The notes below the pieces were generated by a model that saw nothing but the letters and a program-made list of their open reading frames with translations, was not told the origin of the DNA and did no database searches. From Octopus bimaculoides (lineage: Eukaryota), in contig NC_068988.1 in assembly GCF_001194135.2 (NCBI RefSeq), positions 92,921,775 through 92,957,187 of the forward strand: 35,413 nt of DNA, in the 5' to 3' direction. Position numbers and translations under genes: made by a program. This document shows, one piece after another, positions 2,808 to 33,550 of the stretch; within the stretch, counting starts at the first letter, position 1, and every line of letters starts with the position of its first letter.

Positions 2808-2899
2808 GCAACAAGTGGCAGAAAGTATATAAGATGACCAGAAACTCATTTGAAAGAAGTCCTATTTATTTATACTGGGAAAATTTGCCTATTGAAAAG
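2808..2899 (+). CDS. Paralog A exon 2 (phase 1 to 0): (G)NKWQKVYKMTRNSFERSPIYLYWENLPIEK
   Basis: Acceptor TTTCTGATTGTTTCAG, donor GTAATA; open frame; aligns with gene B exon 2 (NPLYLYWDSLPIKE). Confidence 0.85.
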
Positions 2900-3054
2900 G
2901 TAATACACTTTTGAAATGACAAAAAGATCCACATTTAAATAACAATTACTCAGTTCCTTATCCCTTGGGATATATGATGTTTACCTTTCCTTGTCGATAT
3001 TGCAGTGGTGTATGTAATTAGTGCTGTTGGTTTTGTCCATGTTCTTTCCACTGT

Positions 3055-3590
3055 TTAACCCTTAGATTCAATCAGGGTCCAGTTTTGATTCCTTGTTTTA
3101 TTTTCATACATAGTATATCTATAACAAGACTATCCAATGTATTCTATTACTAGGTGGTAGGGTATAATCTGAGAGAGGTTTGCCTTCTATTTCTAGTAGA
3201 TTAAGGGAGAAAATTGAAGCTGATTCTGTTGTATGTGAGGTTAAAATGGAGTGTGGCATAAATCATATCAACTATGGTGGAAGTGTTATCATGTACATGT
3301 TTTGTCTTGGTATAAAAGATGAGCTACAGCAAATATTCTGGTCAGTACCACAGATATGCTTGTCAGATGCTTGACCTTAACCGGTCGAGCATGTCCCTTT
3401 GGGGCTAAAAATATGTGCATCTCCGATTACGAGCAGAAGTAGTGGGGAAACATCATAGCCATGTGTTGAGAGGAATTGTTTGGGGTTTGAATAATTCACT
3501 TCTGGAAAGAAAGGTGTTTTATTCATCGTCCTTGAAACAAACCTTATTCAGGCACCTTTTGAACGGGATAGGCTACTCTGGACTTGGAGA
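3055..3590. repeat. Unclassified interspersed repeat
   Basis: Resembles an abundant octopus repeat as I recall it (TTGACCTTAACCGGTCGAGCATGTCCC..GAGCAGAAGTAGTGGGG..); no recognisable protein; not verifiable within the window. Confidence 0.35.
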
Positions 3591-3636
3591 AAATTCTAAC
3601 TAGGTTCCACCTCCGAGGTCGACTTTTCCTTCCATC

Positions 3637-3682
<46 letters not shown>

Positions 3683-4217
3683 NNNNNNNNNNNNNNNNNN
3701 NNNNNNNNNNNNNNNNNNNNNNNNNNNNNNNNNNNNNNNNNNNNNNNNNNNNNNNNNNNNNNNNNNNNNNNNNNNNNNNNNNNNNNNNNNNNNNNNNNNN
3801 NNNNNNNNNNNNNNNNNNNNNNNNNNNNNNNNNNNNNNNNNNNNNNNNNNNNNNNNNNNNNNNNNNNNNNNNNNNNNNNNNNNNNNNNNNNNNNNNNNNN
3901 NNNNNNNNNNNNNNNNNNNNNNNNNNNNNNNNNNNNNNNNNNNNNNNNNNNNNNNNNNNNNNNNNNNNNNNNNNNNNNNNNNNNNNNNNNNNNNNNNNNN
4001 NNNNNNNNNNNNNNNNNNNNNNNNNNNNNNNNNNNNNNNNNNNNNNNNNNNNNNNNNNNNNNNNNNNNNNNNNNNNNNNNNNNNNNNNNNNNNNNNNNNN
4101 NNNNNNNNNNNNNNNNNNNNNNNNNNNNNNNNNNNNNNNNNNNNNNNNNNNNNNNNNNNNNNNNNNNNNNNNNNNNNNNNNNNNNNNNNNNNNNNNNNNN
4201 NNNNNNNNNNNNNNNNN

Positions 4218-4450
4218 GTTTTCCTGTCTTGTTTTTTGTCCGCCACTACATTCCTCCATGGCAAGGTTTAATTTGTGTATACAAATTTAATTTGCGGTCC
4301 ATGGGAAGAGCCGTTTTAACGATGCGTCCTGCCCAGCTCTTCGAAACGCCGGTGTTAAAACGGGGGTAGCTGATGAAGAAGAATGTTCTCTATGTGGCTT
4401 ATGTGTTTTCTCGTCTACGTTTTGTTTGCAATGTCCTGTACCCAGATATG
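4218..4450 (+). repeat. Interspersed repeat fragment, loosely related to 12640-12940; possibly Penelope-type terminal repeat
   Basis: Shared layout CTTCG(A/C)AACGC(C)GG(T/A)GT...CTGA(T/A)GAAG..TTCT(C/T)TATGT..GATGTCCTGTACC / AATGTCCTGTACC. Confidence 0.4.
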
Positions 4451-4812
4451 CACCTATACATACAGGTGGATGTCGGTATGCACATACTTGTACGTATATA
4501 TGCATATACTCATTTACTATTTGTTTATATATATATATATATATAACAAACTGAAACATCTGTAAATGTCATTTTCAATCTAATTAAAATATGACCATTT
4601 AATACCAATGATAAACTTCTAATTGTTAATTGTTGCTCCATTTCTTCTGTGTGAATATATTAAACCACAGTTTACCATTTAAATTACCAATTACTATTAA
4701 CTTTATAGCAAGACCTATACATGATTAGGTAATACACTAGTAGTGCCTACGGATACATTTGTCCCTTAGGCGGTTGCATAACCTCTAACTCATAGTTTTA
4801 TATAAATATATA

Positions 4813-5261
4813 CTCTTACTCTTTACTCTTTTACTTGTTTCAGTCAATTGACTGCGGTCATGCTGGAGCTCCGCCTTTAGTCGAGGAAATCGACCCCAAG
4901 ACTTTGTAAGCCTAGCACTTATTCTACCGGCCTCTTTTGCCGAACCGCTAAGTTACGGGGACGTAAACACGCCAGCATCGGTTATCAAGCGATGTTGGGG
5001 GGGAACAAACACACACACATACAAACATATACATACAAACATATACATACACACATATACACACAAACACACACACATATATATATATACATATACATAT
5101 ATACGACGGGCTTCTTTCAGTTTCCGTCTACCAAATCCACTCACAAGTCTTTGGTCGGCCCGAGGCTATAGTAGAAGACACTTGCCCAAGGTGCCACGCA
5201 GTGGGACTGAACCCGGAACCATGTGGTTGATAAGCAAGCTACTTACCACACAGCCACTCCT
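4813..5261 (-). mobile_element. SINE family beta, near full-length (tRNA-like head, internal TA/TG tract, 3' module)
   Basis: Reverse complement of 25348-25780 (GGAGTGGCTGTGTGGTAAGTAGCTTGC..GGTTCAGTCCCACTGCGTG..GGCGGTGCTCCAGCATG). Confidence 0.9.
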
Positions 5262-6163
5262 ATATATATATATAGTGGTCTAGCGAGAGAAAAAAACAGT
5301 CAATAGACTATGTATTATTCATTTAAAATGCAGAGATGCCTATAATAGGGATAATTGTTTTTATNNNNNNNNNNNNNNNNNNNNNNNNNNNNNNNNNNNN
5401 NNNNNNNNNNNNNNNNNNNNNNNNNNNNNNNNNNNNNNNNNNNNNNNNNNNNNNNNNNNNNNNNNNNNNNNNNNNNNNNNNNNNNNNNNNNNNNNNNNNN
5501 NNNNNNNNNNNNNNNNNNNNNNNNNNNNNNNNNNNNNNNNNNNNNNNNNNNNNNNNNNNNNNNNNNNNNNNNNNNNNNNNNNNNNNNNNNNNNNNNNNNN
5601 NNNNNNNNNNNNNNNNNNNNNNNNNNNNNNNNNNNNNNNNNNNNNNNNNNNNNNNNNNNNNNNNNNNNNNNNNNNNNNNNNNNNNNNNNNNNNNNNNNNN
5701 NNNNNNNNNNNNNNNNNNNNNNNNNNNNNNNNNNNNNNNNNNNNNNNNNNNNNNNNNNNNNNNNNNNNNNNNNNNNNNNNNNNNNNNNNNTATACGCACA
5801 CAAACACACGTTTTACCCTTTCACTTTCGCTTCTCTTTTCTTTTTGTCTCTTTCTCTCTCACTCACACACACGCACGCACACACACTCTCTCTCTCTCAC
5901 TCTCTCTCTCTCACTCACTCTCTCTCTCTCACTCTCTCTCCCTCTCTCCCTTTCTTTTCCTAACTTCTCTATTCCTTTTTCTCTTTTGTTCTAAGACTTT
6001 CTTGCTCTCTGTCTCACCCTTCCTCACTTTTCTCTTTCCCTCTCTTCCTCACCCGCTTTCTCTCTCCTTATATCTCATCCTTATTTTTTCCCTCTTTCTG
6101 CTACTCACTCCTCTCTCACTCTTTTACATTCTTTATTAATCCTTCTCAACTTTTCATTTTCAG

Positions 6164-6312
6164 GTCGAATTTCGGGTGAGGAGATATAACGGAGATTTAG
6201 TGTATCTGTTCAATGGAAGAGGGACAAATCCTACATCGTTCTACCGGAATGATAACTTCCTTTCTATTAATAGAAATAACAGTGTTAAAAGGAAGTTTAC
6301 ATCCAACAATAA
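6164..6312 (+). CDS. Paralog A exon 3 (phase 0 to 2): VEFRVRRYNGDLVYLFNGRGTNPTSFYRNDNFLSINRNNSVKRKFTSNN
   Basis: Acceptor CTTTTCATTTTCAG after a long pyrimidine tract; donor AA|GTATAT; open frame; aligns with gene B exon 3 (FNGTGSNLSSWFQED). Confidence 0.85.
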
Positions 6313-6564
6313 GTATATATTATCTCCTTATTTGTGTTAACCGCTTTAATGTTTTCATGATAATAATAATGATTTCTCGCAGTCAAAGAATAATGGCATA
6401 TTTTGAGGGATGAGTGATAGCAATTTTCTTGATTTCATTAATTAACAGGTATTAATTTACCGAGCCTGGAATAATGAGAGGCAAATGTTGGCTTGTTAGG
6501 ATTTGAACTCAGAACGTTAAGGAAAGAAACTATCACTTGCCGTTTCTTACATTCACTGTTTTCG

Positions 6565-6669
6565 TAGTAGTAGTAGTAGTAGTAGTAGTTGCGGTGGTGG
6601 TGGAGGTTGTGGTGGTGGTGGTGGTGGTGGTGAAAGTAATAGCAGCAGTAGTAGCAGTACAGCAGCAAC

Positions 6670-6739
<70 letters not shown>

Positions 6740-6750
6740 ACAACAACAAA
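6565..6750. repeat. Compound (TAG)n/(GGT)n/(CAG)n/(CAA)n microsatellite
   Basis: Directly visible. Confidence 0.95.
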
Positions 6751-7599
6751 AGGCAAATACTGATGCTGTAACAGAACACTAGGATTTGCGACAGAATGCA
6801 AAGATTAGAAGAAACGTTTTTACACAGCGAGTTCCACGGAGAAAACCAAGTTTGTGAAACATCATGAATCATCGCAGAACGGAGATTTATAAATAGAAAA
6901 TAAAAGTCCGTTGATGGTTGCTCAAGCTAAAACTCTGAGCAATAATTTAGTGAGTGTAGATATGTATTCCATATCTTCAACGTGTAAGGGCCGCTTACAT
7001 TATCAGCAAATCGACAATATTAATTATATTTTAGAAAGCTTTGTTGACACAGAAAAGATACAAGTGACGTCATAAGGTTTGAATTTACTTGCAAAATTAA
7101 TATAAGGATATAACACTTCAGGCAAAAGGTAGAACCATGAACTAGAAAAGATTCGATATGGAGATGGTAAAGCAAAATCTTCTATAGGATTTTTGACATC
7201 TAAACAGAGAGAACTGAACACCATAGACCATATATTCTTCTCAGCATCAGCATCAGTATTATTCCGCTTCTGCTCTCGAACACAACAGGTTGATGCCACT
7301 GGTTTTTGTTGGCTGCAATTTTCTCTGCATTTGGCCATTTTAATATTAACTTCTCACATTTCGGTTGTGAATGTCCTTCGTCATGTAGATTTCGGGTTTT
7401 GTCTCTTTCTTTTTCTCTCTTTTGCAGTCCATTTGGAAGCTGTTTTAGAATGGTGTAGTTCTGGTAGTCGAAGTATGTGACCTGCTAGTTTTAATTTTAA
7501 TCTTTGTTATTTGAGGTTTTCTCAAAGTGGTCTTGTATTCAGTGATAATAGCGAGTCCCACCGAGAGTATAATATGAGGACTAATACAGGAAAGACATC

Positions 7600-7840
7600 A
7601 ACTAGAAACCATTTTGGCTGCAATATTACCATAAAAGAAGTAGAAAACTGTCAAAATAAAAGGTTCTTCAAATCGAAATATTTAAGATGTGGGGCCTGAA
7701 AGTGAAAACCATACCAAAAATATTTGGAAATTATTAGGTATGACAAAAGATATAAGCATAGAAACCATACCAAGACATACAACACTACACATTGTCCAAA
7801 ATTATAGGACCATCCTGCATCCTGCGCGAAGTATTATTAA
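7600..7840 (+). mobile_element. 3' fragment of an RLE-type (R4/Dong-like) non-LTR retrotransposon
   Basis: Frameshifted peptides NITIKEVE.. and (R)MWGLKVKTIPKI..LGM..HIVQ..GPSCILREV resemble the RLE C-terminal pattern KE.EK..KY.DL..E..RMW.....TIP....ALG....AHILR. Confidence 0.55.
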
Positions 7841-8219
7841 TTTAACAGCACAATCCAAATAGAACAATCTTCAAACACACAATACAATTTATAAAATAAG
7901 CACCTAATAAAATAAAAGCAATAATTACTTTACAAGATCAATGCCTAATAAAGTAACAAAACTCACATTCCATACACTACACAAGAAATCATCAAACACT
8001 GATATATAACATGAAACAACAGGCTGAACTCCGTAGCAAAATAAACTCATGCACAGTTCTGACAGGTTAGAGCTATGCTACTCTATCCCACATAAAAATG
8101 AGAACAGAGAAAATGCTACAAACATTTCAGAAACACGGAGATGCAACAAACGGCGCAATTGAAACTTGCATGAAACTATCAAAGAAATATCAACAATAGT
8201 TTCTAATTAAAGGACAGAG

Positions 8220-8355
8220 CCAGGGATATATAGGCCCCAGTAAATAACTGTTGCATTAATTTATCGATTTTGGGGGTAAATTTGAACTCAGAACATAAAG
8301 AGCTGAAAGCAATACACCTTGCTATTTTTTCCGATGATCTAACGATTCTGCCACT
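8220..8355 (-). mobile_element. SINE family alpha, decayed fragment
   Basis: TTTGAACTCAGAAC..AACGATTCTGCC shared with other alpha copies; further decayed pieces at ~6455-6545(-), 22025-22115(+), 23595-23665(+), 25870-26000(+). Confidence 0.6.
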
Positions 8356-8847
8356 CCACACATGCCATTCCAAATGCAAAACTACTGAACTTCTATAATT
8401 ATTTCTAAGTTGAGTTCAAGAACTAAAATTAGGGAAGAGGATGAAAGATGCTACTTTTTGGTTTTCAAAGATTACGCGATTCCAAGACAAGTGGAAGTGT
8501 CTTATTTTCTAAAATATTCTGAATGCTTTTTTTCACTCAAATAAGACTTTACTTTTATCAGTCGATGGGACTCGACAAACATTCTTTCTATCAAAGAAAT
8601 ATGACTGGTTTGTCTTTATTGAAAACCCTTTTGATCATTGATTTTCTTGATCACAGCTGAACTGAGCCAAATTACAAGATCTGATTTATTCAAATTACAC
8701 GTTATTTATACGTTGTATATCGTGAATAACAATCGGGCTATGAGACACTCGCTAATCTCAATGGGGAAAAGGTAAATTCGTCAATTTAATTAAGCAGAAC
8801 ATCATTTCTGCTGATTGTCGTAAACACACAGACATGACAGAAGTAAA

Positions 8848-10029
8848 TAGACACACATATAATCATTAAAATTTATTTAAATCTGAAATTATACATTCAA
8901 ATTATTATTGATTATTATAATGTGAATATCTAATATTTAGTAGACATGCCCTTGGCATTTTTCATTGCAAGGACCCAATTAAACATGTTATTGATTAGAT
9001 GAATATTCTCTTCAAGAATTTCTTGCCAAGTTACATGCAGTAATCTCAGAAGATCTGGCTGGGATCATGCCTTTTTGTTCTTTTTACGAAGTATCCTGTC
9101 CATTACACCCCAGGTGGATTCAAAAGGATTCATATCTGATGACTAGCTTGGACGTGGAAGCTTCTTAAGGTCGTTCTCTTCCAACCGATCTTGGGTCTTT
9201 TTAGCCGTGTGACAAGGAGCGCCATCTTTCATAAATAAAGCGTCACCGTTAATCATTTTACCATAGGAGAAGATTGGGAGGAATGACTTCGGCAATATGG
9301 GCACATATTTATTTGAGTTTATGTTTCCCTTACACTTCACCAGCTCTGTTCAACCATTACTTCAAATTGCTCCCCAGACCATCACATTGTTGGCTGCAAT
9401 CTCTTCACATCGAATTCTTGGCCACAGAATCTCCAGACACACACTCGATCACTGTCAGAAAATACAGCAAATATGGACTCATCAGAGAATATGACAATGT
9501 CCCAAAATGCTAGTGGCCTCTCCACCATGTCATTGGTCCCATCTCTTCTCCGCTTAATATTGGCTTGCCGAAGATGTGGCTTCCTTCTTTCTGCTTCGCC
9601 ATAGTAGCCAAGTTCGTGGAGATACCTGACAGCTGTTCTCAGACTGACATCAACTTGTTCTGCTATGCCAGAGGCCTTGCAACGAGGATTATCCTACAGA
9701 CTTCTCTTAACAAAGCGAAAGGTCCTGTGAGGAGGCCCTAATCGAACTGGGCAAAGTGATGTGCACTCCTTCCTTTCTCTGGTGATTTGCACAATCACTC
9801 TATTAACTGTAGAAATAGGGACCCCAAGGTTTTCTGCAAATTTACGCTGGTGAAGTCCACCTACAGACAGACTGACAATATGGTCCCTTTGAAATTCGGA
9901 CAGTTTTAAGGTTTCTTTTGATTAGACAGTCAAAAATAGAAACTGAGCCACAAAAATGTCAATTAACAAAAGAATTTATACATTTTTAAATTTGAAATAA
10001 ACATCAAACTATGTTTTATGGAGTGTCTA
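8848..10029 (-). mobile_element. Near full-length decayed Tc1-family DNA transposon (DD34E), in intron 3 of paralog A
   Basis: Minus-strand translation: LSEFQRDHIV..VPISTVNRVI (HTH), RRKP, FSDES, VMVWGAI, KDGAPCH..34 aa..DMNPFESTW; several stops and a frameshift; degenerate TIRs TAGACAC.CATA.AA at 8848 and 10029. Confidence 0.9.
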
Positions 10030-10120
10030 TTTACTTCTTTATGTTTTATGGGGTGTCATGTCTTTGTATAGTCGTTCAAGTTTTCATTATGATAATCCTT
10101 ATTAAATTTATCAATTGTAG

Positions 10121-10230
10121 TACCACAGAACCGCATTATCACATGGATTACGGAGACGATTCTAATTTTGGTAATTGGATCGACGCCAAAATGGTGAATG
10201 GAAAGTACGAACTTCAAATGTATCACAATA
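10121..10230 (+). CDS. Paralog A exon 4 (phase 2 to 1): (N)TTEPHYHMDYGDDSNFGNWIDAKMVNGKYELQMYHN
   Basis: Acceptor TTTATCAATTGTAG, donor A|GTATGT; phases match exon 3 donor and gene B exon 4; P-aromatic..W(I/L) pattern shared with B exon 4. Confidence 0.75.
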
Positions 10231-10363
10231 GTATGTAAAATGTATCATCCTGTTTGTGAATGTAAATAATTGTATGTCCGTATGTTTTGTATAGATATAT
10301 ACATTATGTGCGTTTATGAGTATGAGTATATATGTTTATCTGTATGCATATATGCATTCATAT

Positions 10364-10366
<3 letters not shown>

Positions 10367-10409
<43 letters not shown>

Positions 10410-10454
10410 GGATGGATGGATGGATGGATGGATGGATGGATGGATGGATGGATG

Positions 10455-10508
<54 letters not shown>
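10367..10508. repeat. (TAGA)n(TGGA)n(TAGA)n tetranucleotide array
   Basis: Directly visible. Confidence 0.95.
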
Positions 10509-10509
<1 letters not shown>

Positions 10510-10686
10510 TTATGTCTGGGGAGAGTCAGAGTGCTTTAATATAACACTCTCTCCAGACACAACGAAATTTGTTTCAACTCACGGATTCACATGAGGAATC
10601 GTGCAAACCAAATACAAAACGAAGTAAATATATGTGTGTATGTGTACGAATAAGATGTAGATATATGTGTGTGTGTGTGGGGGGGG

Positions 10687-10753
<67 letters not shown>

Positions 10754-11139
10754 GAAAAGTATGCATATTTGAATATTTGAATACTAATTGTTTTCATACA
10801 AGCTACTTTTGGATTACATACATACGCGCATACACATGTTAATTAGCACGTCAAATAGCAATTACAAATTGGTACCTGGCTCTCATAAGACCATCAAATC
10901 TGCAATAAGTAAACGATTCGGCAGAATACCGCGTTGTCCATCGTGAATGTTAACAAGGGAAGCGTTCAGATCTTAGGTAGAGGAGTTCGTTCGAAACTTA
11001 TATCGAGTCCCCACCGAATGCTGAAACAAAGAGTATTAAATCCTGAAATTGTGCCGAGAGGCGTGGGGTGAGATGAGAAGGAATGCGTGTCCCAGCATGC
11101 CGAAGTGGGTCCAAGAGGAGACAACCGTTAATTATTGGG

Positions 11140-11410
11140 ATTTGGCATGTTACAACTTTTATCGTTAAGGAGTAAGGACTAGAGGAGGAGGCCAAACGCT
11201 ACCCGCTACATATAGTTGGTATCTCTTGTGCTAGGCTCCGTGGTTCTAGCAGGAATGGTGCCAACTACGTCTTCACTAGTGGTGTGGGGATACTCTCAAA
11301 TCCGGGCTGTTGGGTTGTTATGCAGTGGATACCATTAGGTGGGAAGGTTTGTCTCCTAAAACTTAGACTGGAAGAAGGGCCGCTGTTGTTTTCGCAGGAT
11401 ATGCACCAAA
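11140..11410 (+). mobile_element. RTE-clade LINE, N-terminal AP-endonuclease fragment
   Basis: IWHVTTFIVKE*GLEEEAKRYPLHIVGIS..VFTSGVGIL..WIPLGGKVCLLKLRL..GYAP matches the RTE endonuclease pattern (TWNV..L..KE.ELV.E..RY.LDIVG....GVGIL..VYAP); GC-richer 11000-11140 is probably its 5' part. Confidence 0.7.
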
Positions 11411-11589
11411 GAATAAACCATATACAGACCTTTACTTGATGAAGTCACTGCGGCATTAAATGTAATTTCTTCTGGAAATGGGATCTCCAATATAAGTATA
11501 TCTGGTATATGAATACTTTGGGACAGATGCCAAAGATAAATTTTGTTATCATCGTGAACGTCTTTTGCGTCTATGATGGACGTTCGGGT

Positions 11590-11705
11590 AAAGACAGGAG
11601 CACTAGGCTTACAAAGAATAAAGTCCTGGAATCGATTTGCTAGATTAAAGGCGGTGCTCCAGCATGACCGCTGTCAAATGACTGAAACAAATAAAAGAAT
11701 AAAAG
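11590..11705 (+). mobile_element. SINE family beta 3' module
   Basis: CTAGGCTTACAAAGAATAA..AAAGGCGGTGCTCCAGCATGACCGC..AAATGACTGAAAC as in 25680-25770. Confidence 0.85.
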
Positions 11706-11761
11706 AAAAGAATTAAAGAATATATATATACATGTATATACATATATATGCATGTATATAT

Positions 11762-11820
<59 letters not shown>

Positions 11821-11950
11821 NNNNNNNNNNNNNNNNNNNNNNNNNNNNNNNNNNNNNNNNNNNNNNNNNNNNNNNNNNNNNNNNNNNNNNNNNNNNNNNN
11901 NNNNNNNNNNNNNNNNNNNNNNNNNNNNNNNNNNNNNNNNNNNNNNNNNN

Positions 11951-12115
11951 CCTTTAGTCGAGCAAATCGACCCCAGGACTTATTCTTTGTAAGCCTAGTA
12001 CTTATTCTATCGGTTTCTTTTGCCGAACCGCTAAGTTACGGGGACGCCAACACACCAGCATCGGTTGTCAAGCTATGTTGGGTGGACAAACACAGACACA
12101 CAAACATATACACAC
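11951..12115 (-). mobile_element. SINE family beta 3' half
   Basis: CCTTTAGTCGAGCAAATCGACCCC..GCCGAACCGCTAAGTTACGGGGACG..ACACCAGCATCGGTTGTCAAG, same as 4875-5005. Confidence 0.85.
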
Positions 12116-12172
<57 letters not shown>

Positions 12173-12639
12173 NNNNNNNNNNNNNNNNNNNNNNNNNNNN
12201 NNNNNNNNNNNNNNNNNNNNNNNNNNNNNNNNNNNNNNNNNNNNNNNNNNNNNNNNNNNNNNNNNNNNNNNNNNNNNNNNNNNNNNNNNNNNNNNNNNNN
12301 NNNNNNNNNNNNNNNNNNNNNNNNNNNNNNNNNNNNNNNNNNNNNNTACGCACGTTTCATGCTACTTCAATTTATTTAAGTAATGTGAGCATTACCTTAA
12401 ATGCAATATGAAGAGCAATCTTCAGCTGCACGAAAAAATGTAGAAAAAAAGACATATTACAAATGTGGCAACATATTAAAACCAAGTGGGAGAGAGCAAG
12501 TGGGACTAGCCTGATAGACCCTGCTATGTCAAGATGGACTTATATATTCTTTGTCTCTCATTCACATCTAACTTCGCGTTCAAAATAATAATTTTTCTAT
12601 CGTCTTGGCTTAACAGCCCTTACCGTTTGTTTTCACTGT

Positions 12640-12940
12640 TCTGTCTTGTTTTTACTGTCTTGTTCTTGTTTACACTTTCACCCTCCGCAAAAAATTCCAA
12701 ATTTAATTAATTTGCTTTTGCGGGAAGGACTGTTCCAACGAAGTCGCGTATTGTCCTTGCCTTCGCAACGCGGAGTAGATGGAGCAGGGACAACTGAAGA
12801 AGGGAACTATTCTTTATGTTGCATGTTTCGTTTCTCTGTTTGTTTTTTTCGTTGTTCGAAAAAAAGTTCGTTTTCCGTCTTCGTCTTTATGTCTTCGTTT
12901 CTCATTGTGTTCAACGTTTTTTGTGATGTCCTGTACCTAT
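12640..12940 (+). repeat. Interspersed repeat fragment related to 4218-4450
   Basis: Shared motif order ending in GATGTCCTGTACC followed by (TA)n. Confidence 0.4.
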
Positions 12941-13209
12941 ATATATACATGTATGTATACATATAGATGTAGGTATGTACATATATGTATGGATATATGC
13001 ATACATTTACATATTATTTATGTTATATATATGTATATATATATATATATATATNNNNNNNNNNNNNNNNNNNNNNNNNNNNNNNNNNNNNNNNNNNNNN
13101 NNNNNNNNNNNNNNNNGTAATGTAATGTAATATAAAGCTGAACAAATTAACATCAAATATACAGTGCGTGTGTTTTTATTGGCTAAACTGGCAATATGAC
13201 CATCCCCAA

Positions 13210-13282
<73 letters not shown>

Positions 13283-13947
13283 TATACATAAGCATACATA
13301 TAATTGCAAGGTAAGAAAAAACTGGGAACAAAATCATCGATTATGATTTCTGTCTAAATGAACGAACGCTGTAATGTTTGTACAATATTACTTGTTTATT
13401 GATTGGGGGGAGAAAACCTTCGATTAATTACTTTCGATTGAATTGGCTTTATTGCACGTAGTTAAATGATAGCCCATTAATCAGCCCGGGAACGTATGTC
13501 TTTGTGCGTATATGTCTGTGCGAGTGCATGCGTGTGTGTGTGTGTGTGTGTGTTTTCTCACGCTTTTCGTTTTTTGCCTTTATTTAATAACTCAATTATA
13601 ACGGGATTTACACGATAAAACACCACTTGAGCGTGTAAAATATTTTTTCATACAACAGCTTCTTAGAAGAAAGCTAATATACGCACATACAAGTCAACGA
13701 TCAACGATCCTCAATTATCCAAGCGTTAATTTATGCCTCACATTCACCAAACGGATGTTACAGTTGTCCATCGATCAGCTTATGTCTCTTACTGCTGAAA
13801 GAAGTCTCCAGTTTCTTGTTTGAACCTGTTTCTTGTCTTCAGTTTCTTTCATTCTCACCATTTTATTCATATTCACTTGTGAATTTATCAATTACACTCC
13901 ATGGTATATCTATCGTTATAGTTCGTTAAATGCTCTTTAATGATTAT

Positions 13948-14009
<62 letters not shown>

Positions 14010-14930: not shown

Positions 14931-15234
14931 AGAAACAATCATGGTTTCATTTGATGCAATTAATTTATATACCAGTATACCTCATAATTATGGGCTATAG
15001 GTAATTCAGTTCTGGCTGGACCAATTTCCGGAAGAAATACCTAAAAAGATCAGTGAAGAATTCATAACTAAATCGGTTGAATTCATCCTACGAAACAACC
15101 ACTTCATGTTTGACAATACGTTTTACCGACAAAAATTCGGAATTGCTATGGGCACTAGGGCAACCCCAGTCATTGCGAACCTAACAATGTGCTACCTGGA
15201 AGTAATAATATACCAGGAATCTTTATCTACCTTT
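14931..15234 (+). mobile_element. Second, oppositely oriented PLE RT fragment
   Basis: MVSFDAINLYTSIPHNYGL*..ILRNNHFMFDNTFYRQKFGIAMGTRATPVIANL; 15048-15234 is an inverted copy of 14726-14912 (8 mismatches in ~187 bp by manual count). Confidence 0.9.
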
Positions 15235-22429: not shown

Positions 22430-23027
22430 TTTCTAAACCCTGTACAAGAACTCGGAAGATTGGGCTGACTTTTCCGATGGCACGCAGATATCGATAAATG
22501 GTTGAATGACCAAATCAAAGCTTCTCTGCTAGTTCATCAATGGGATTTTGTTCCACCAGGGTTTGCAGGACGCCCTCGTCGAGCTCTACAGATCTTCCAG
22601 GACGAGGCACTTCTAGGCTGTAGTTTCCGGTTCGAAATTTCTGGAACCACCATTGACACTGGCTCACGCTTATTGTCCGATCCCCACATACTGCATTGCT
22701 CTTCCTCACACTTTCCATTGCACTGTTGCTTTCATTGAACGCATAAAACAAAATAAGCCGAATATGCTCCTTTGCCAGTTCCATTATAGCTTTGAAAAAA
22801 TAACTGTTAAAATCGAACTGCACTCTTCAAAATTTGCACTAAGAATAAGTACAAGGTAAAATTACTACCTGCGTTTATAGCAAGTTGATGCAGGTAGTTT
22901 ATGCTGTCCCCCTCCATCGTATGTTATTATTCATTTGATTATAATGCACCAAAAGAATGAATTTACGCCTTGTTGCATACCTTATAGTATACCAACAACG
23001 TAAAGTGTAATTTGGACCAGCCCCTTA
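22430..23027 (-). mobile_element. 5' part of a mariner element (TIR + N-terminal HTH of transposase)
   Basis: MELAKEHIRLILFYAFN..VCGDRTISVSQCQWWFQKFRTGNYSLEVPRPGRSVELDE..L.FGHSTIYRYLRAIGKVS; terminal TA+AGGGGCTGGTCCAAATTACAC. Confidence 0.85.
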
Positions 23028-24502: not shown

Positions 24503-24842
24503 ATGGAAATATCAAATGAATATCATTTATCTCCTCTGAAAGTGTTGCTGGCTTTCAGCTTTATCTGTTTTGGGAATTTGGCAAGTGGAGGCCCATATAA
24601 TTTTGCTGGGCAAAGTTACTTTGAAAAACTACCTGTATCAAAATGCTTCCCGAATTTAAAACAGAGAGTAGTAAAACCGGTGGCATCCATAATTGAATGT
24701 GCATCACATTGTTTACAAAAGAAATATAGCTTCTTTAGCTATTGCGATGAGGAATGTAAACTATATGAAAAGGAAAAGGGAGAGATTAAGATGGGATCTG
24801 AAAGTTGCTCGTGTACCCTGTATTTTAAGTTACAAAGTGACG
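24503..24842 (+). CDS. Gene B exon 1: signal peptide + PAN/apple-like module of an uncharacterised secreted protein
   Basis: Acceptor TTTCTTTTAG ending 24500, ATG 24503, hydrophobic KVLLAFSFICFGNLASG, motif SIIECASHC..FFSYCDEECKLYE, donor G|GTATGT (phase 1). The ORF-track start at 24410 is microsatellite-derived. Confidence 0.85.
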
Positions 24843-24954
24843 GTATGTAAATAACACTTTCTTGAAATTAAATTATTTTCTTTATTGCCCACAAGGGGCT
24901 AAACATAGAGGGGACAAACAATATTTAGCCCCTTGTAGGGAGTAAAGAAATAAG

Positions 24955-25154
24955 AAACGTTAGCACGCCGGGCGAAATGCTTAGAGGTATTTCGTCTGTC
25001 TTTACATTCTGAGTTCAAACTCCGCCGAGATTGACTTTACCTTTCATCCTTTCGGGGTTGATATATTAAGTACCAGTTGCGTACTAGGGTCGATCTAATC
25101 AACTGGCCCCCTCCCCAAAAAATTTCGGGCCTTGTGCCTAGAGTAGAAAACAAT
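24955..25154 (+). mobile_element. SINE family alpha (tRNA-like head + Nin/Deu-like core), intron 1 of gene B
   Basis: CGTTAGCACGCCGGGCGAAATGC..GAGTTCAAACTCCGCC (B-box-like), core CCTTTCATCCTTTCGGGGTTGATA..AAGTACCAG. Confidence 0.9.
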
Positions 25155-25510: not shown

Positions 25511-25556
<46 letters not shown>

Positions 25557-25780
25557 TGTATGAGTGTGTATATGTTCGTGTGTCTGTGTTTGTCCCCCAA
25601 CATCGCTTGACAACCGATGCTGGTGTGTTTACGTCCCCGTAACTTAGCTGTTCGGCAAATGAGACCGATAGAATAAGTACTAGGCTTACAAAGAATAAGA
25701 TCTGGGGTTGATTTGCTCGACTAAAGGCGGTGCTCCAGCATGGCCGCAGTCAAATGACTGAAATATGTAAAAAAAAAAAA
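25348..25780 (+). mobile_element. SINE family beta, full-length, intron 1 of gene B
   Basis: A-box-like TGGCTGTGTGG, B-box-like GGTTCAGTCCC, internal (TA)n, 3' module, poly(A) tail. Confidence 0.9.
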
Positions 25781-27246
25781 GTACATTAAAACTCTTACCA
25801 GATGTGTAGAAGAATATTCTGTAGATTTCATTCGCGAAATTCATTATTTAACATAATGTCAAACGTAAGGCCGAATGGAATCGGTTGAGCCACTGATACA
25901 ATGCTGTGCCGTATCTAATAACGTCGCTTTCAAATTCTGTCAGAGTCCACTTGGTCTTTCTTCCACCAAGGGTCTATAAACTAAGCACCAGCTAATTACT
26001 ATGGTCCTTGAGATAGTCTGTACCCTCTCCTTAAATCTGTGGAACCTTCCCATTCAGAAATTAATATTAGGTCGAATAATTTCGTTTTAAAATATTACAA
26101 AATATCAGGGCAAATCGAACGCAGAATACATCGTTTATGTGTCTGCTTTACTATCTCATTCGCTTGTGTCACTGGGATTTTGCTGATCTGCAATACATTA
26201 CCACATTATGTATAATGACTTAGTATCTACTGAAGACATTTCTTTATTTTGTTAAACCCATATAACTCCGTTTAGCGACTCAGTTCACCAGGGACCAATA
26301 AGACTAAAATATGTCCCTTGCCGGGAAACAAACGGCAGATCTTTTCCTTGCTGAAGGTAAATAAATTTTAAATTCCTCGAAATTATCTCCACTTACCTTT
26401 GATAGTCACGGAACGGTAACAGTAGGTTTTTGTTTACTCCCTCTCCAACTAAGAGTGAAATTTTACTGAAGGACAAGTAATGATAAATGTAAGTGGAGAA
26501 ATGTAAGTAGAGTAAATATTCCTTTATCAATTAGTCTCTTTAAATGAACTTACTGAGACGATTAAAACATCTTACGGCCTTAGTTGAAAAATAATTACAA
26601 AAACTGAATTCAATTAAACTCTTATAGTCATTAAATTGACAGAATCAATTCTTCAGTATATTTATTCTCATAACAAAACTGCTTTTTAAGCAATGAAACA
26701 CTACAAGATTGTGTCATAGCATGGCTCCAGCTTGACTGTAACCAGCAAAACTGTATTCAGTCTGACTAAATCAAATCTATTGTAGATAGATATCTTCTCT
26801 GAATAATTTATTCTCTGGAGAACTGATAGTTTTCTACACCAACAAGGGTACATTCTTGTACATTTACTTACTAATTCTCCAACCACCACTTCAGTAAGTG
26901 CATGGAAGTTAATACCTCACTGATGAGGACGTGATAAAACTGAAGCATGTTAGTTATTATCTCCCCTACTTGCCAAAATAATTAGAATTATACTACTACT
27001 TTATATTGTTCACCCCCCCCCCCTTTGCTTAACACTACCTGAACTGTTTTTCAGGTAGATGGCATGTATGAATTAGTCTTTAAGAAATATCATTTTTCTA
27101 ATGTTAATTAAGGACTTATATTCTCATGATATTTATCAATTAAACTTTTTATTCATAACTCTTTCTCTAAATTATGAAATTTTAGCTTAAAGCCTTGTTT
27201 GTAATCTTACAACTAAAACATTCGTAATTATTTATCCTTCACACAG

Positions 27247-27341
27247 GTCCAGAAAATTATGTGAATATATTTGAAATAGAAGGAGGTGGCTTTTTAAAAA
27301 ATCCGCTTTATCTGTATTGGGACAGTTTACCTATTAAAGAG
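27247..27341 (+). CDS. Gene B exon 2 (phase 1 to 0): (G)PENYVNIFEIEGGGFLKNPLYLYWDSLPIKE
   Basis: Acceptor TTTATCCTTCACACAG, donor GTAAAA; phase-compatible; paralogous to 2808-2899. Confidence 0.85.
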
Positions 27342-27775: not shown

Positions 27776-27916
27776 NNNNNNNNNNNNNNNNNNNNNNNNN
27801 NNNNNNNNNNNNNNNNNNNNNNNNNNNNNNNNNNNNNNNNNNNNNNNNNNNNNNNNNNNNNNNNNNNNNNNNNNNNNNNNNNNNNNNNNNNNNNNNNNNN
27901 NNNNNNNNNNNNNNNN

Positions 27917-29310: not shown

Positions 29311-30338
29311 ATGTTCATACTCATAATAGGTGATGTGAATGCATTAGTCTGGGGTCGTCTTGGATGTAGAGACGCCTGCTCAATGATCTCAAATCACTAG
29401 ACATCGATGCGGTGGCTATCGGCGTTCCCAGAATTTCCGAGGCACGAGCATTTGTACCCATCTTCGGTGACTACGAACTGTATGCATCTCTAAAACTTCC
29501 GGCAATGGATGATGGAGTAGTTGCGTTGTTTCGGAAAGGTCTTGATCTCTGAATACGGATCATTTTCCTACACTCAGAAAAGAAATCGGTGGAGCTGGAC
29601 ATGACTTACATCATAAGCCATGCCTTCAGAATAGAAGCACAAAGGATATCCTTCTCCACATCAGACCGAAGGGCGGGGTGTTTCAACACTATATCTACTT
29701 GCCCAGCGTGTGGTGTGGGTGGAAAACGCTCTCATCGCGTCTATCATTTACTACCCTCATACTGTTGTGTTTTGCCCTGCTTTGCGAATGGCGAAAATGG
29801 TGTGCTAACTGTTCAGCCTTCTACGACATCTCCAGTGTTTCTGTGGCGGGGAGCAGGTATAGTTGCCGTTTGTTAGACGCACTTTTCTGCTGCTAGTCTC
29901 CCTGTCAGTGCTGCAGTACTAGACGAAGCGTTAACCGAGGCTGGGCGCCCGATACCTGGAGAGTCCCTCAGATGCTTGCATCTCTCTGCCAGTAGAGCAA
30001 CGCAGTCGGTGGATGTTCTTTCGTCGCATTCCATAGAGGGTTAGTGAGGTGTAAGAGCGATATCGTCATCAGAGAACCTCTAGTCGTCGATGAGAAATCC
30101 ACTGGCTGCTCTGTTCCAGAGGACTTTCGGACCAGGGTCTATGGATACTATACAAAGATATCTGTTAAGGCAGTGGTAAGTGGTACTAGACTGGCATTGC
30201 TGGTTCGAGATGAACTCTTCAGGTATGGTAATGCCATAAGCCATGCCTGTCCGAGATGCGAGCAGAGCAACGAAACTGTCCTTCACGCACTCGGATATTG
30301 CTCGAGCATCGTTGATTTGTGGAGTCATGTTGAACAGT
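29311..30338 (+). mobile_element. Heavily deleted Tx1/L1-type LINE ORF2 (endonuclease start, RT scraps, C-terminal zinc knuckle), intron 2 of gene B
   Basis: MFILIIGDVN..RRLLNDLKSLDIDAVAI..DGVVALFRKGLDL..AFRI (APE); CPRCEQSNETVLHALGYCSSIVDLWSHVEQFL (CCHC / zf-RVT). Confidence 0.8.
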
Positions 30339-30612
30339 TCCTCTCTCTACCATTTTCCTTCTTCGCCTTTTTCTCCCTCTCTATCTCTTCTCGCACTTTC
30401 TCCTCTGCCCTCACTCTCTTTCTCTTTATATATATCCACACTCACTCACACTCTCTCTTAAACTGTATCCTCCCTCTCACTCTTTATCTGTGTCTTCTCT
30501 TTGCGTCCTCTCTCCCTCCAACTCTCTCTCTCTCTCTCTCTCTTTCTTTCTCTCTCTCCCGTACCCTTCATCTCAGATTATTTCCCAATCCTCTTTTCCT
30601 TTCTACTTGCAG

Positions 30613-30767
30613 GTGAGATTAAGTCTGAGAGACAATTCCGGTGTTGTTCGACGTTTATCTTTCAATGGAACGGGGTCGAATCTTTCATCGTGGTTCCAGG
30701 AAGATAAAGTTATTTTTTCAGGCCAATGGACATTTCAGGGACAAGCAGAATTCTTTTTCAATAATTA
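30613..30767 (+). CDS. Gene B exon 3 (phase 0 to 2): VRLSLRDNSGVVRRLSFNGTGSNLSSWFQEDKVIFSGQWTFQGQAEFFFNN
   Basis: Acceptor TTTCCTTTCTACTTGCAG, donor TA|GTATGT; paralogous to 6164-6312. Confidence 0.85.
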
Positions 30768-30980
30768 GTATGTATTATTTATTATTCTGTTTTTTTTAAT
30801 GTTTTTTAAGTAACAAAATGGTTTGATGACAGAAACAGAGGACAGAAACCAAACAACCACGAGAAATTCATCCTTTATATAAATGATTACTTTAATTATT
30901 GCTTCTGTTTTATGCACAAGGTCAGCGATTTTGAGAGAAGGGAATTAATACTGTAAGGGATTAGTGGATATATATAATAC

Positions 30981-32008
30981 AAAAATAGGACAAGAACACA
31001 AAACATCCAGACAGTTAGGTGATACAAAAAAGGGACAACAAAACATCCAGACAGACGATACAAGGAAAACAAGGACAGGTCATTCGGAGTTTCCTATCCT
31101 CAGTCGAGTCCCAGATTATCTTTGCAATCTCGGCTGGTTATACTCGAGATTGCTCCAATCTAGCCATCCCCAAGGAAAAACTAAGCTAAGAGCATTAGAT
31201 TCTTTGGAAGAAAGCAGCGAATGTATACGAAAACAAGGACGGGGAAAAAACGAAAAATGTTCCACAAATACAAATGCAATTAACAGGACATAACAGGTGT
31301 CTTTCGACTAAGGATGAATTAAATTAAATAGCGTGTGTGGAAGTAAAGCCTCACGGCAAGAACATGAGATTATGCAGGCACAGGGAGGAATATAGATATT
31401 GCACGGATGGTAGTCGAACCAAGAAAGAAAAGTCAGGCTTGGCCGAACACCGGTCACGTGGTGAGAGAAGAGAGAGCAGTAGAGACAGAGGGATAGAAGA
31501 ATTAAGGTGGGGCGAGAAAAAATTGAAAGAGACACTGAAATGAAAGAGGAAGGAAAGTGAGCATGAAGAGAAGGTCAGGAAATGTGAGAGAGGGGGAACG
31601 AAAGAGCGAAGAGTGGAATGAACGAAGTGTGAAAGGGCTGATAGAAAGAAGGATAGAATGGAAGAATACAAAGAATAATAGAGTCGTACAAAATTTATAT
31701 ATATATATATATATATATNNNNNNNNNNNNNNNNNNNNNNNNNNNNNNNNNNNNNNNNNNNNNNNNNNNNNNNNNNNNNNNNNNNNNNTATATATAGATA
31801 TAGACTTACATATAAGAGACCAAAGTGTACGTACGCCGCTATATTTTATATATAAGAAATATAAAAATGGGACAAGAACGCAAAACATCCAGACAGTTAT
31901 GTGATACAAAAAAGTGACATCAAAACATCCAGACAGACGATACAAGGAAAACAAGGACGGGTCATTCGGAGTTTTCTTTCCTCGGTCGAGTTCCAGCTTA
32001 TCTTTGCA
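30981..32008. repeat. Two copies of a 146-bp repeat in direct orientation (30981-31126 and 31863-32008)
   Basis: GGACAAGAAC(A/G)CAAAACATCCAGACAGTTA.GTGATACAAAAAAG..CAGACAGACGATACAAGGAAAACAAGGAC.GGTCATTCGGAG..TTATCTTTGCA. Confidence 0.85.
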
Positions 32009-32225
32009 GTATATATATGAATGTGTGTTACAAGATCCCTGATGGACTAAGTGAAGTAGGAGGATACACGTGGATGGAAAAGGTCACTGACGAAGTCACA
32101 GATGTGTGACGAAAGATTTCTCGGGAATGGACATAGGATAAAATAAGAACAGTAATAAACGAGTGAAAAACAAATGCAGAGTGAATGCGTTTATTGGCAA
32201 AAAGATTGACTATCCCGAAATATAG

Positions 32226-32256
<31 letters not shown>

Positions 32257-33267
32257 ACGTGAGAGAGTTAGGGGTTGGGGGTACAACCCACTAAGGGATA
32301 GTATCTATCCGGTATACTGCTGGGAGGGTACCCAATTATTGCTGCACTAGTGCTATACTAGGTGCAATCAATGGGAGTGGGTAAAAGTGGAGGTTTTACC
32401 CAAAATTTGTATAACAATTAGAAAATGGAGGATAATATGCTGAACCCAACTACTTGCAGACGGTGTATCCCGTTGAATTCATTAGTTTAATTCATAGCAA
32501 AAGTGATAAAAAAGAAAGAAANNNNNNNNNNNNNNNNNNNNNNNNNNNNNNNNNNNNNNNNNNNNNNNNNNNNNNNNNNNNNNNNNNNNNNNNNNNNNNN
32601 NNNNNNNNNNNNNNNNNNNNNNNNNNNNNNNNNNNNNNNNNNNNNNNNNNNNNNNNNNNNNNNNNNNNNNNNNNNNNNNNNNNNNNNNNNNNNNNNNNNN
32701 NNNNNNNNNNNNNNNNNNNNNNNNNNNNNNNNNNNNNNNNNNNNNNNNNNNNNNNNNNNNNNNNNNNNNNNNNNNNNNNNNNNNNNNNNNNNNNNNNNNN
32801 NNNNNNNNNNNNNNNNNNNNNNNNNNNNNNNNNNNNNNNNNNNNNNNNNNNNNNNNNNNNNNNNNNNNNNNNNNNNNNNNNNNNNNNNNNNNNNNNNNNN
32901 NNNNNNNNNNNNNNNNNNNNNNNNNNNNNNNNNNNNNNNNNNNNNNNNNNNNNNNNNNNNNNNNNNNNNNNNNNNNNNNNNNNNNNNNNNNNNNNNNNNN
33001 NNNNNNNNNNNNNNNNNNNNNNNNNNNNNNNNNNNNNNNNNNNNNNNNNNNNNNNNNNNNNNNNNNNNNNNNNNNNNNNNNNNNNNNNNNNNNNNNNNNN
33101 NNNNNNNNNNNNNNNNNNNNNNNNNNNNNNNNNNNNNNNNNNNNNNNNNNNNNNNNNNNNNNNNNNNNNNNNNNNNNNNNNNNNNNNNNNNNNNNNNNNN
33201 NNNNNNNNNNNNNNNNNNNNNNNNNNNNNNNNNNNNNNNNNNNNNNNNNNNNNNNNNNNNNNNNNNN

Positions 33268-33300
<33 letters not shown>

Positions 33301-33449
33301 TATTATGGTACTTGTATTTCACACATTCACTTATGCCGATGATGGAAAGGTGACAAAACTAATAGTCATAAGAACAATCGTAAAAGATTTCATAATAAAC
33401 TTTACTGAATTATGCTTAAACTATCATTTCTCATATATGTTAGTTTCAG

Positions 33450-33550
33450 TCAACCTTGTTTTGAAATTAAAGCGAAATCTTCAACATCAACGCTTTGGCT
33501 TCAGGTATGCAATAATATCATGAAGTACTCAAATGGAACGGCAGCTACAG
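33450..33550 (+). CDS. Gene B exon 4 (phase 2 to 1): (Y)QPCFEIKAKSSTSTLWLQVCNNIMKYSNGTAAT
   Basis: Acceptor TTAGTTTCAG, strong donor G|GTAAGT; same phases as A exon 4. Confidence 0.7.

Follow-up and report, generated by a model that had tools for sequence, protein, structure and literature searches.

Two neighbouring genes, hereafter abbreviated as A and B, lie on the forward strand of a 35,413-nt stretch of the Octopus bimaculoides genome (hereafter the window, i.e. the whole stretch of DNA that was analysed, to whose positions all coordinates refer). A previous reading of the letters alone, hereafter the sequence-only reading, had proposed them as a cryptic tandem pair of deeply diverged paralogs, spliced by GT-AG introns into open frames with a common series of junction phases. 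Extraction of the exons and comparison with paralogs confirm the gene structure: AG and GT flank all seven exons and the intron phases are 1,0,2,1 in both genes, the three exons of A joining into one open frame of 351 nt (92+149+110; 116 aa) and the four of B, with its last exon taken from position 33450, into 691 nt (340+95+155+101) that are open from the ATG and encode 230 aa. Open AG..GT segments of 80-400 nt number 6101 on the same strand of the window; neither a splice signal nor an open frame therefore carries weight in itself, and it is homology that does. The two proteins match each other in BLASTP (E=9e-12, 34% identity over 59 aa), their exon junctions fall in identical alignment columns (e.g. 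LPIEK/V versus LPIKE/V, the slash marking the junction), and each of the seven exons, but nothing else in the window, is matched by about 19 independent Octopus paralogs. By these sequence comparisons, A and B are homologous and real members of an Octopus-only family. The coordinates of their exons, together with those of the assembly gaps and other features, are collected in table 1. None of the eleven runs of N in the window (the assembly gaps) overlaps an exon, and thus no claim on reading frames depends on a gap; collinearity with the related locus LOC106874575 on both sides of the two gaps in the A intron supports order and orientation there. Runs of (TA)n, (TG)n or (GA)n border most of the gaps.

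Table 1. Exons of genes A and B, assembly gaps and related features along the window
Feature	Position	Strand	Length (nt)	Phase in/out	Description
Block collinear with the LOC106874575 locus	2647-10408	+			blastn; both introns of A included; positions 13001-20055 of that locus sequence
A, family exon 2	2808-2899	+	92	1/0	encodes ..NKWQKVYKMTRNSFERSPIYLYWENLPIEK
Assembly gaps	3683-4217, 5365-5790				intron between the first two exons of A
A, family exon 3	6164-6312	+	149	0/2	encodes the FNGxGTN..S(W/F) core
A, family exon 4	10121-10230	+	110	2/1	encodes TTEPHYHMDYGDDSNFGNWIDAKMVNGKYELQMYHN
Assembly gaps	11821-13116 (three gaps), 18228-18280				intergenic
B, exon 1	24503-24842	+	340		ATG, signal-peptide-like leader, Cys-rich PAN/Apple-like module
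B, exon 2	27247-27341	+	95	1/0	encodes ..PENYVNIFEIEGGGFLKNPLYLYWDSLPIKE
Assembly gaps	27776-27916, 31719-31788, 32522-33267				introns of B
B, exon 3	30613-30767	+	155	0/2	encodes VRLSLRDNSGVVRRLSFNGTGSNLSSWFQEDKVIF..
B, exon 4	33444-33550	+	107	2/1	with the RefSeq acceptor (101 nt from 33450)
Assembly gap	34100-34716				downstream of the last exon of B in the window
Possible third family gene	34805-35335	+			homologous only to the first ~700 nt of LOC106874575 intron 1

The first exon of A in the window, equivalent to family exon 2, is matched by 19 paralogs (best E 2e-13) and equals in length exon 2 of LOC106874575 and of two tandem genes of Octopus sinensis, while exon 4 of A matches a paralog at E 3e-10 and is identical in length to exon 4 of LOC106874575. 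The motifs that the sequence-only reading had quoted as shared by A and B belong to the conserved core of the family alignment, which is characterised by SPIYLYWDxLPIEKV and FNGTGTNSTSWF (extended as FNGTGTNSTSWF..DK..PW). The corresponding motifs are NPLYLYWDSLPIKEV and FNGTGSNLSSWFQEDK in B, SPIYLYWENLPIEKV and FNGRGTNPTSFYRND in A, the core motif being still recognisable in the latter. The description of the two genes as deeply diverged paralogs also holds, their proteins being 23-34% identical. The second exons of both genes seem to be preceded by further homology ('YPFLIVS' and 'LFILHTG' versus 'YILLKEN'), which was rejected as coding and is read as polypyrimidine tract.

Gene B is the annotated but uncharacterized gene LOC106874588, for its protein is 99% identical to XP_014777863.1 ('uncharacterized protein LOC106874588'). 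Hence the term cryptic does not apply to B, and only A apparently constitutes an unannotated family member, represented by exons 2-4; no protein identical to A emerged from database searches, a weak piece of evidence given the patchiness of the word-indexed homology search. The RefSeq model XP_014777863.1 starts at an internal Met (position 24791, the protein beginning with MGSESCSC), so that the signal peptide and the larger part of the PAN module are missing from it. The segment 24503-24842 aligns with exon 1 of six full-length paralogs, which encodes signal peptide and Cys-rich module (E 1e-5 to 6e-8). The true start of B is probably the ATG at 24503, and the RefSeq model of LOC106874588 is likely to be truncated at its N-terminus. 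At the other end of the gene, XP_014777863.1 uses an acceptor at 33444, 6 nt upstream of the position 33450 chosen by the sequence-only reading, thereby adding the residues 'FS' without change of phase. The upstream position is the more likely start of exon 4, because the RefSeq model uses it and because the family motif 'NFSxPxF' is thereby recovered; 'NYFSQPCF' is the reading that the family alignment prefers at this point. XP_014777863.1 then carries a further terminal exon (..ASSKMVPLTKMRINVLLK followed by the stop codon), with the protein ending in ..MRINVLLK, and this exon is absent from the readable window. B is the most divergent member of the family in its C-terminal half, and its mature N-terminal module contains seven cysteines versus eight in typical paralogs; the Cys of 'xxCGYFSYC' is replaced (KKYSFFSYC), so that one Cys would stay unpaired.

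Putative mobile-element remnants are associated with the introns of B. A copy of a short dispersed repeat resembling short interspersed elements (SINEs) lies in intron 1, just after exon 1. An open reading frame (ORF) on the forward strand, 30044-30616, gives a match to zf-RVT, the reverse-transcriptase zinc-binding domain, of 22.3 bits (below the cut-off of 27.5) and ends just inside exon 3 of B; this retroelement-like remnant is directly upstream of the exon 3 acceptor, and the frame of exon 3 itself is open from 30334 to 30765.

An exhaustive HMMER scan with XP_014777863.1 retrieved 33 relatives among 1.84 billion representative proteins. Seventeen of these are close clusters with proteins of 111-402 aa, all from O. 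bimaculoides, O. sinensis or O. vulgaris and named either 'uncharacterized' or, by UniProt, 'Apple domain-containing protein'; clustering at 50% identity thus gives the family no fewer than 17 clusters. The same scan yielded nothing above threshold from squid, cuttlefish or nautilus. The suggestion of a larger array expanded in cephalopods consequently stands as regards a tandem, lineage-expanded family, but not as regards cephalopods at large, since the family is seen only in the genus Octopus; the absence of a named one-to-one ortholog across metazoans, which the sequence-only reading implied, is borne out. Examples in O. bimaculoides are LOC106874575 (XP_014777839), LOC106876621-625, LOC106867736, LOC106879016 and LOC106880398, and in O. 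sinensis LOC118764386. Literature searches by locus, accession and keyword returned nothing on this octopus family and no described function.

The family alignment follows a common plan of signal peptide, Cys-rich module, beta domain and C-terminal '..VISVLLK', encoded by five exons of about 330/92/149/110/50 nt with phases 1,0,2,1, and this plan recurs in three other loci. LOC106874575, at CM046608.1:92.89-92.92 Mb of assembly GCA_001194135.2, has exons of 328/92/149/110/50 nt, and LOC106876623 repeats these five blocks and has the beginning of LOC106876621 as a head-to-head neighbour. The O. sinensis locus CM016866.1:72,020,675-72,101,023 contains two tandem genes whose internal exons measure 92/149/113 and 92/149/116 nt, with phases 1,0,2,1 and a terminal exon of 50 nt. 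In the O. sinensis locus and at LOC106876623, as well as in the series LOC106876621-625, the genes are arranged in tandem. The 50-nt terminal exon ends in ..(V/I)(I/V)SV(L/I)(L/F)K and the stop codon. The internal exons of A (92/149/110 nt) and B (95/155/107 nt) conform to the same pattern, and both genes share with the paralogs the phases and core motifs, B being itself one of the annotated loci. Identical phase architecture is consequently not a property of the pair, as had been thought, but the plan of the whole family in both O. sinensis and other O. bimaculoides loci, inherited by A and B from the family ancestor without any special link between them. A differs from the paralogs in being partial, in being matched by no protein found and in lacking their sequons, Trp and PW, whereas B differs in its divergent C-terminal half and in the loss of one of the eight usual PAN cysteines.

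A third family gene may start near 34805, with its exon 1 in the gap 34100-34716. The homology of this segment with LOC106874575 (76-83% identity, partly inverted) begins 74 nt into intron 1 of the latter, right after the microsatellite that follows the gap, and neither the rest of the window nor 140 kb of related loci contains another sequence that matches this segment, which comprises the last ~530 readable bases. The upstream gene of the O. sinensis locus has its 5' exons, including that for signal peptide and PAN module, in two copies (4472-6530 and 10001-12071 of the locus), about 5.5 kb apart and with ~98% protein identity; the duplication is either local and very recent or a product of the assembly.

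The closest relative of A is not B. Its protein is 53% identical to that of LOC106874575 and only 23% to that of B, and the two loci are collinear at 83% nucleotide identity through the introns. On this sequence evidence, A is a segmental duplicate of the LOC106874575 lineage and is not derived from B. The old local duplication advanced by the sequence-only reading is accordingly upheld as paralogy but not as the origin of an A-B pair, for a sister other than B implies that the adjacency of A and B reflects a mixed array rather than a single old duplication. Collinearity between A and LOC106874575 ends 178 nt past exon 4 of A, at a microsatellite block. By analogy with LOC106874575, exon 1 of A would be expected about 3.07 kb upstream of position 2808, just off the window. 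Neither this exon, for signal peptide and PAN module, nor the terminal exon of A was found in the readable window by tblastn, regular expressions, a position-specific scoring matrix (PSSM) or word-7 blastn. A candidate terminal exon for A at 14089-14127 ('RSLLVISVVCGF' followed by a stop, PSSM score 8.5) was discarded as noise (z<2.5 versus real terminal exons), as were two others at 20261-20287 and 26470-26547 ('..PLSISLFK' and stop), again with z<2.5, in searches that were also aimed at a third copy.

The microsatellite block at the end of collinearity, 10340-10760, consists of (TAGA)n/(TGGA)n and then (TG)n. A rearrangement removing or displacing the terminal exon of A would coincide with the expansion of these microsatellites.

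The protein encoded by the family was analysed with the full-length product of LOC106874575. An AlphaFold2 model built from an alignment of 25 family and distant sequences (predicted local distance difference test, pLDDT, 86.7; predicted template modelling score, pTM, 0.80) shows a low-confidence N-terminal helix resembling a signal peptide, a helix-plus-sheet module and a mostly beta C-terminal domain with two short helices; the terminal exon supplies the last long strand of this domain (residues 228-241, pLDDT 94-97). Modelling of XP_014777863.1 from its single sequence was unusable (pLDDT 44). Foldseek comparison of the N-terminal module with the PDB retrieved PAN/Apple folds with probability 0.99-1.0 and root-mean-square deviations of 3.3-3.8 Å over ~83 residues, including domain A4 of factor XI, the PAN domain of plasminogen, an Eimeria PAN domain and the N domain of HGF (entries 2j8j, 1hky, 4dur and 4iua). 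The fold was thus tested on LOC106874575, and exon 1 of B aligns to this region. The likeness to PAN/Apple domains (PF00024 PAN_1 and PF14295 PAN_4) lies in the fold and in the Cys-rich pattern, whereas sequence scores remain below the Pfam gathering thresholds, and the fusion of PAN with the beta domain is otherwise found only in a few echinoderm proteins, in one of which the order is reversed. PAN/Apple modules occur in the N domains of plasminogen and HGF, in factor XI, prekallikrein and apicomplexan microneme proteins, and mediate protein or carbohydrate binding. The beta domain has no Pfam model and, in the LOC106874575 prediction, had no structural match in the PDB at E<1e-3, and Pfam returned nothing for either A or B at E<=10. 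The earlier suggestion of secreted-type proteins agrees with the hydrophobic leader of B, which is followed by the Cys-rich PAN/Apple-like module; from this leader we infer that proteins of the family are secreted, and the NGT and NST sequons conserved in B and paralogs suggest that they are N-glycosylated.

The domain shared by A and B is no orphan, having distant relatives. The HMMER scan reached echinoderm, hemichordate, amphioxus and gastropod proteins, to which a profile search added sponge and coral members. These proteins share a module of ~190 aa, often repeated two to four times, and carry EGF, ZP, Sushi, C-type lectin, SUEL lectin, D8C and PAN domains, companions which indicate extracellular contexts. 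The consensus of the module reads W.LVFK..G.G..Y.LW ... HYKS..V..W.SL....VK..LY ... FNG.GSD...WFS..RL.SSPW.DL ... RRF.IN..Y.GC..D.GWLVV.D...C.WE ... AD...I.I. A hidden Markov model built exclusively from non-octopus sequences matches every octopus member (1e-7 to 1e-17), XP_014777863.1 best of all (1.1e-17), and hhalign of the octopus profile against that of the ~190-aa domain gives 98.4% at E=5e-15. B keeps the most ancestral-looking core, and its exon 3 is the part closest to the ancestral metazoan domain. The octopus beta domain (~130 aa) aligns end to end with the longer domain but is ~60 residues shorter, three parts being absent, namely the stretch that follows W..VFK and the loops 'RRFxINxxYxGC..D' and 'C.WE....P..YS'; the invariant Cys139, the near-invariant Cys156 and the 'RRFxINxxYxGCxxDxGWLVV' segment are deleted in all octopus members. 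It is also set apart by its context, since the proteins that contain the ~190-aa domain are large and composed of many domains, among them EGF, ZP, Sushi, C-type lectin and D8C. The similarity robustly supports that the octopus beta domain is a trimmed derivative of this unnamed sponge-to-amphioxus domain, from which three Cys-bearing insertions would have been removed.

Pfam contains no model of the ~190-aa domain, PDB sequence searches with the profile, B and the sponge and coral sequences gave sub-significant results only, and no function for it was found described in the literature. Its sponge and coral members contain an additional N-terminal segment, 'G.Y.I....F.V.CD...GGWT.V' ('VYCD..GGWT'), with weak matches to Fibrinogen_C (E 0.005), COLFI (1e-4), fibrinogen gamma (0.022), XEEL (0.3) and FIBCD1 (0.2), and one coral member is named 'Fibrinogen C-terminal domain-containing' in UniRef. 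The likeness to the fibrinogen-related domain (FReD, PF00147), to intelectin (X-type lectin) and to the fibrillar collagen C-propeptide (PF01410) is restricted to this sponge/coral segment. All matches fall below curated thresholds and span ~40-95 residues; with the Fibrinogen model, coral members score 16.8-17.1 bits (cut-off 22) along no more than ~40 residues. The segment is absent from the octopus proteins, which do not match PF00147, nor is there any FReD structure among the Foldseek matches of the LOC106874575 model. A remote FReD-like ancestry of the ~190-aa domain is a lead offered by these sequence matches rather than a case of membership.

The close relationship between A and LOC106874575 allows comparison of exons with the introns in which they are embedded. 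Introns differ at 376 of 3577 aligned sites (10.5%), all six exon-abutting segments included, whereas the three exons differ at 99 of 351 sites (28.2%; Fisher 8.6e-18 versus introns). The excess is not significant in exon 2 (15% divergence; 84.8% nucleotide identity) but pronounced in exon 3 (37.6%, p=3e-17), which is 62.4% identical while adjoining intron sequence is 88-91% identical, and in exon 4 (26.4%, p=6e-6; 73.6% identity). The Nei-Gojobori method yields 0.36 nonsynonymous (dN) and 0.33 synonymous (dS) substitutions per site, a ratio of 1.08. Gapped alignment of exon 3 excluded compensating frameshifts as the cause of low exon identity and revealed one segment of ~40 nt that is essentially replaced; a BLAST selection bias behind the high intron identity was likewise rejected, as each of the six intron stretches bordering the exons aligns without interruption. 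When the two O. sinensis genes serve as outgroups, 23-33 changes in 241 nt fall on the lineage of A and 17-27 on that of LOC106874575, while the intron rate (10.5%) predicts by simple arithmetic about 13 per lineage. Exons 2-3 of the four genes are 69-75% identical whatever the intron distance. Since decay alone cannot exceed the neutral rate, something exon-specific is acting, which could be diversifying selection on fast sites, exon-limited conversion or segment exchange, or both.

Taken together, we consider it quite probable (about 80%) that A and B are neighbouring members of a tandem gene family of the genus Octopus, built upon a trimmed ancient domain and subject to accelerated exon divergence. 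In the proposed mechanism, exon 1 would encode the signal peptide and the PAN/Apple module, exons 2-4 the ~130-aa all-beta domain, and exon 5 (50 nt) the last core strand ('..VISVLLK'), the product being a small (~240 aa), secreted and N-glycosylated protein. PAN module and beta domain would bind protein or glycan ligands outside the cell, and duplication may have been followed by rapid change of the surface that exons 3-4 encode, driven by diversifying selection or by an exchange between paralogs that is limited to exons. Gene families of immune recognition and of venoms are known to show such a pattern. A role in binding or recognition outside the cell is proposed here tentatively, by analogy with PAN modules, with the lectin and adhesion settings of the ancestral domain, and with venom and immune families in which exons evolve faster than introns. 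We are even more hesitant as to whether this is an Octopus-specific, hyper-diversifying family of secreted recognition or toxin-like proteins, combining PAN with a trimmed undescribed beta fold and having ligand-facing exons driven apart several times faster than neutral; if true, it would be the cephalopod counterpart of venom or immune-lectin gene arrays.

Several observations weigh against this account. The gene models of A and B are known here from their sequence, and the functional proposal is an analogy. The PAN module remains unseen by Pfam in B and is sub-threshold in paralogs (18.6-18.9 bits versus 21.4 and 27). A has neither exon 1 nor terminal exon in readable sequence, the latter encoding a core strand; moreover, it has lost the NGT and NST sequons (NGT>NGR and NST>NPT), a near-invariant Trp (SWF>SFY) and PW, and may be a pseudogene. 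The exon/intron contrast comes from one gene pair, of which one member is possibly non-functional, and its differences are spread evenly over codon positions (32/29/37), with fourfold sites also elevated (6/22, p=0.02) and synonymous sites raised too, a pattern that simple positive selection on amino acids does not predict.

Some of these points speak for the alternative that survives best, to which we would give somewhat less than even odds, namely that A is a decaying pseudogene left by a partial duplication of LOC106874575 that comprised exons 2-4, with B as the only working gene of the window. In favour of it, the first and last exons of A, the latter encoding a core beta-strand, were retrieved neither by tblastn nor by the PSSM scan or sensitive blastn, and collinearity with the parent locus breaks off 178 nt past exon 4; the loss of both sequons, the near-invariant Trp and PW, the non-homologous stretch of ~40 nt in exon 3, codon positions that are equally different and the absence of an identical protein among database matches are also consistent with it. 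Nevertheless, A keeps canonical splice sites, the exact exon lengths of 92/149/110 nt and an open frame, a combination with a probability of ~0.01 under neutrality. The frame would remain open after ~55 random substitutions with a probability of ~0.045, and escape indels with one of ~0.22, low chances which argue for coding constraint over most of the history of A. Its exons, furthermore, have changed 2-3 times faster than the intron (neutral) rate, which decay cannot exceed, and the functional sister gene LOC106874575 is accelerated as well. As for the missing exons, exon 1 is expected just off the window and exon 5 could sit in the gaps 11821-13116.

A slightly weaker competitor, which we nonetheless take seriously as a minority view, concerns the cause of the excess exon divergence: exon-limited gene conversion or segment replacement from distant paralogs, or homogenisation of introns, instead of positive selection acting through point mutations. 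Conversion would explain why the elevation, about threefold, extends to synonymous and fourfold sites, why the exon identity of A with its sister (71%) equals the plateau of 69-75% seen between any two family members, and why the ~40-nt stretch of exon 3 is replaced wholesale; given that only exons stay alignable among distant paralogs, conversion tracts would presumably be confined to them. However, the sequences available, representatives at 50% identity and three loci, contained no donor; the closest sampled paralog to exon 3 of A reaches ~40-50% at the protein level, and the DNA of this exon is 62-64% identical to all three comparators. There are precedents in snake toxin genes, in which exchange of exon segments is documented for viperid three-finger toxins (PMC2474615) and as ASSET (PMC2711939), and coding exons evolve faster than introns in habu venom genes (PMC6062510). 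The octopus genes resemble such venom and recognition families in forming a tandem multigene family of small secreted Cys-containing proteins, in having exons ~3 times more diverged than introns with dN/dS of about 1 or above, and in the replacement of short exon segments. They differ in that the evidence comes here from a single pair, in that synonymous sites of A and LOC106874575 are elevated too, and in that no tissue, venom or immune link is known for the octopus family.

It is improbable, on the other hand, that A and B constitute one read-through unit, in which exon 4 of A (phase 1 out) would be joined to exon 2 of B (phase 1 in) by skipping exon 1 of B, the product carrying two tandem beta domains. 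A model of this kind exists in XP_036361048.1 of O. sinensis (402 aa, two beta domains; exons at 10001-70349 of the locus), which joins two tandem family genes in exactly this way, exon 4 of one to exon 2 of the next, skipping the upstream terminal exon (~30920-30970 of the locus, '..CLVISVLFN' and stop) and the downstream signal-peptide/PAN exon (53192-53515). Compatible phases, the lack of a terminal exon for A in readable sequence and the tandem repetition of the ancestral domain in amphioxus, echinoderm and mollusc proteins would all fit with read-through. Yet the O. sinensis upstream gene has a good terminal exon of its own (PSSM score 23.5) and the downstream gene its own signal-peptide/PAN exon, so that XP_036361048.1 is probably a read-through fusion model, i.e. 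an annotation artefact; in the A-B product, besides, the first domain would be without its last core strand and the intron would span 17 kb. Finally, the notion that the spliced frames arose by chance, as open AG..GT segments of a DNA rich in AT and repeats, would be favoured by the abundance of such segments but is already refuted by the independent matches of every exon to many paralogs of three species, with the right junctions and exact exon lengths, and by the near identity of B to a RefSeq protein.

Octopus genomes are known for lineage-specific expansions, and most of their small secreted families are unnamed. The annotation of B was already known, and both the family and its ancestral domain are present in databases, though unnamed and unstudied. 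What is new is the definition of the family, the ancestry of its trimmed domain, the absence of a structural neighbour and the contrast between exons and introns. One small secreted octopus family is thereby defined in exon plan, domain make-up and ancestry, the likely N-terminal truncation of the LOC106874588 model is corrected and an O. sinensis model is flagged as a probable fusion. A pan-metazoan extracellular domain without Pfam entry or PDB structural neighbour would be worth curating and solving. The exon/intron contrast, if general, would single the family out as one under diversifying evolution and point to immunity, interaction with prey or venom, mucus and adhesion, or reproduction; the family is not tied to a phenotype and its value is mainly that of a lead.

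Other elements of the window are of mobile or repetitive nature. An ORF on the reverse strand between A and B (22515-22823) contains the HTH_48 domain of Mos1/mariner transposases (E 4e-14) and represents a fragment of a mariner-like element. An inverted repeat with 200-nt arms, 14726-14925 and 15035-15234, which are 94% complementary and 109 nt apart, resembles a miniature inverted-repeat transposable element or a foldback element. Dispersed repeats of ~150-220 nt and SINE-like character are found at 18059-18219 and, inverted, at 24953-25113, as well as at 11951-12168 and 25511-25727; the same repeats have many copies in the O. sinensis locus and one in that of LOC106874575.

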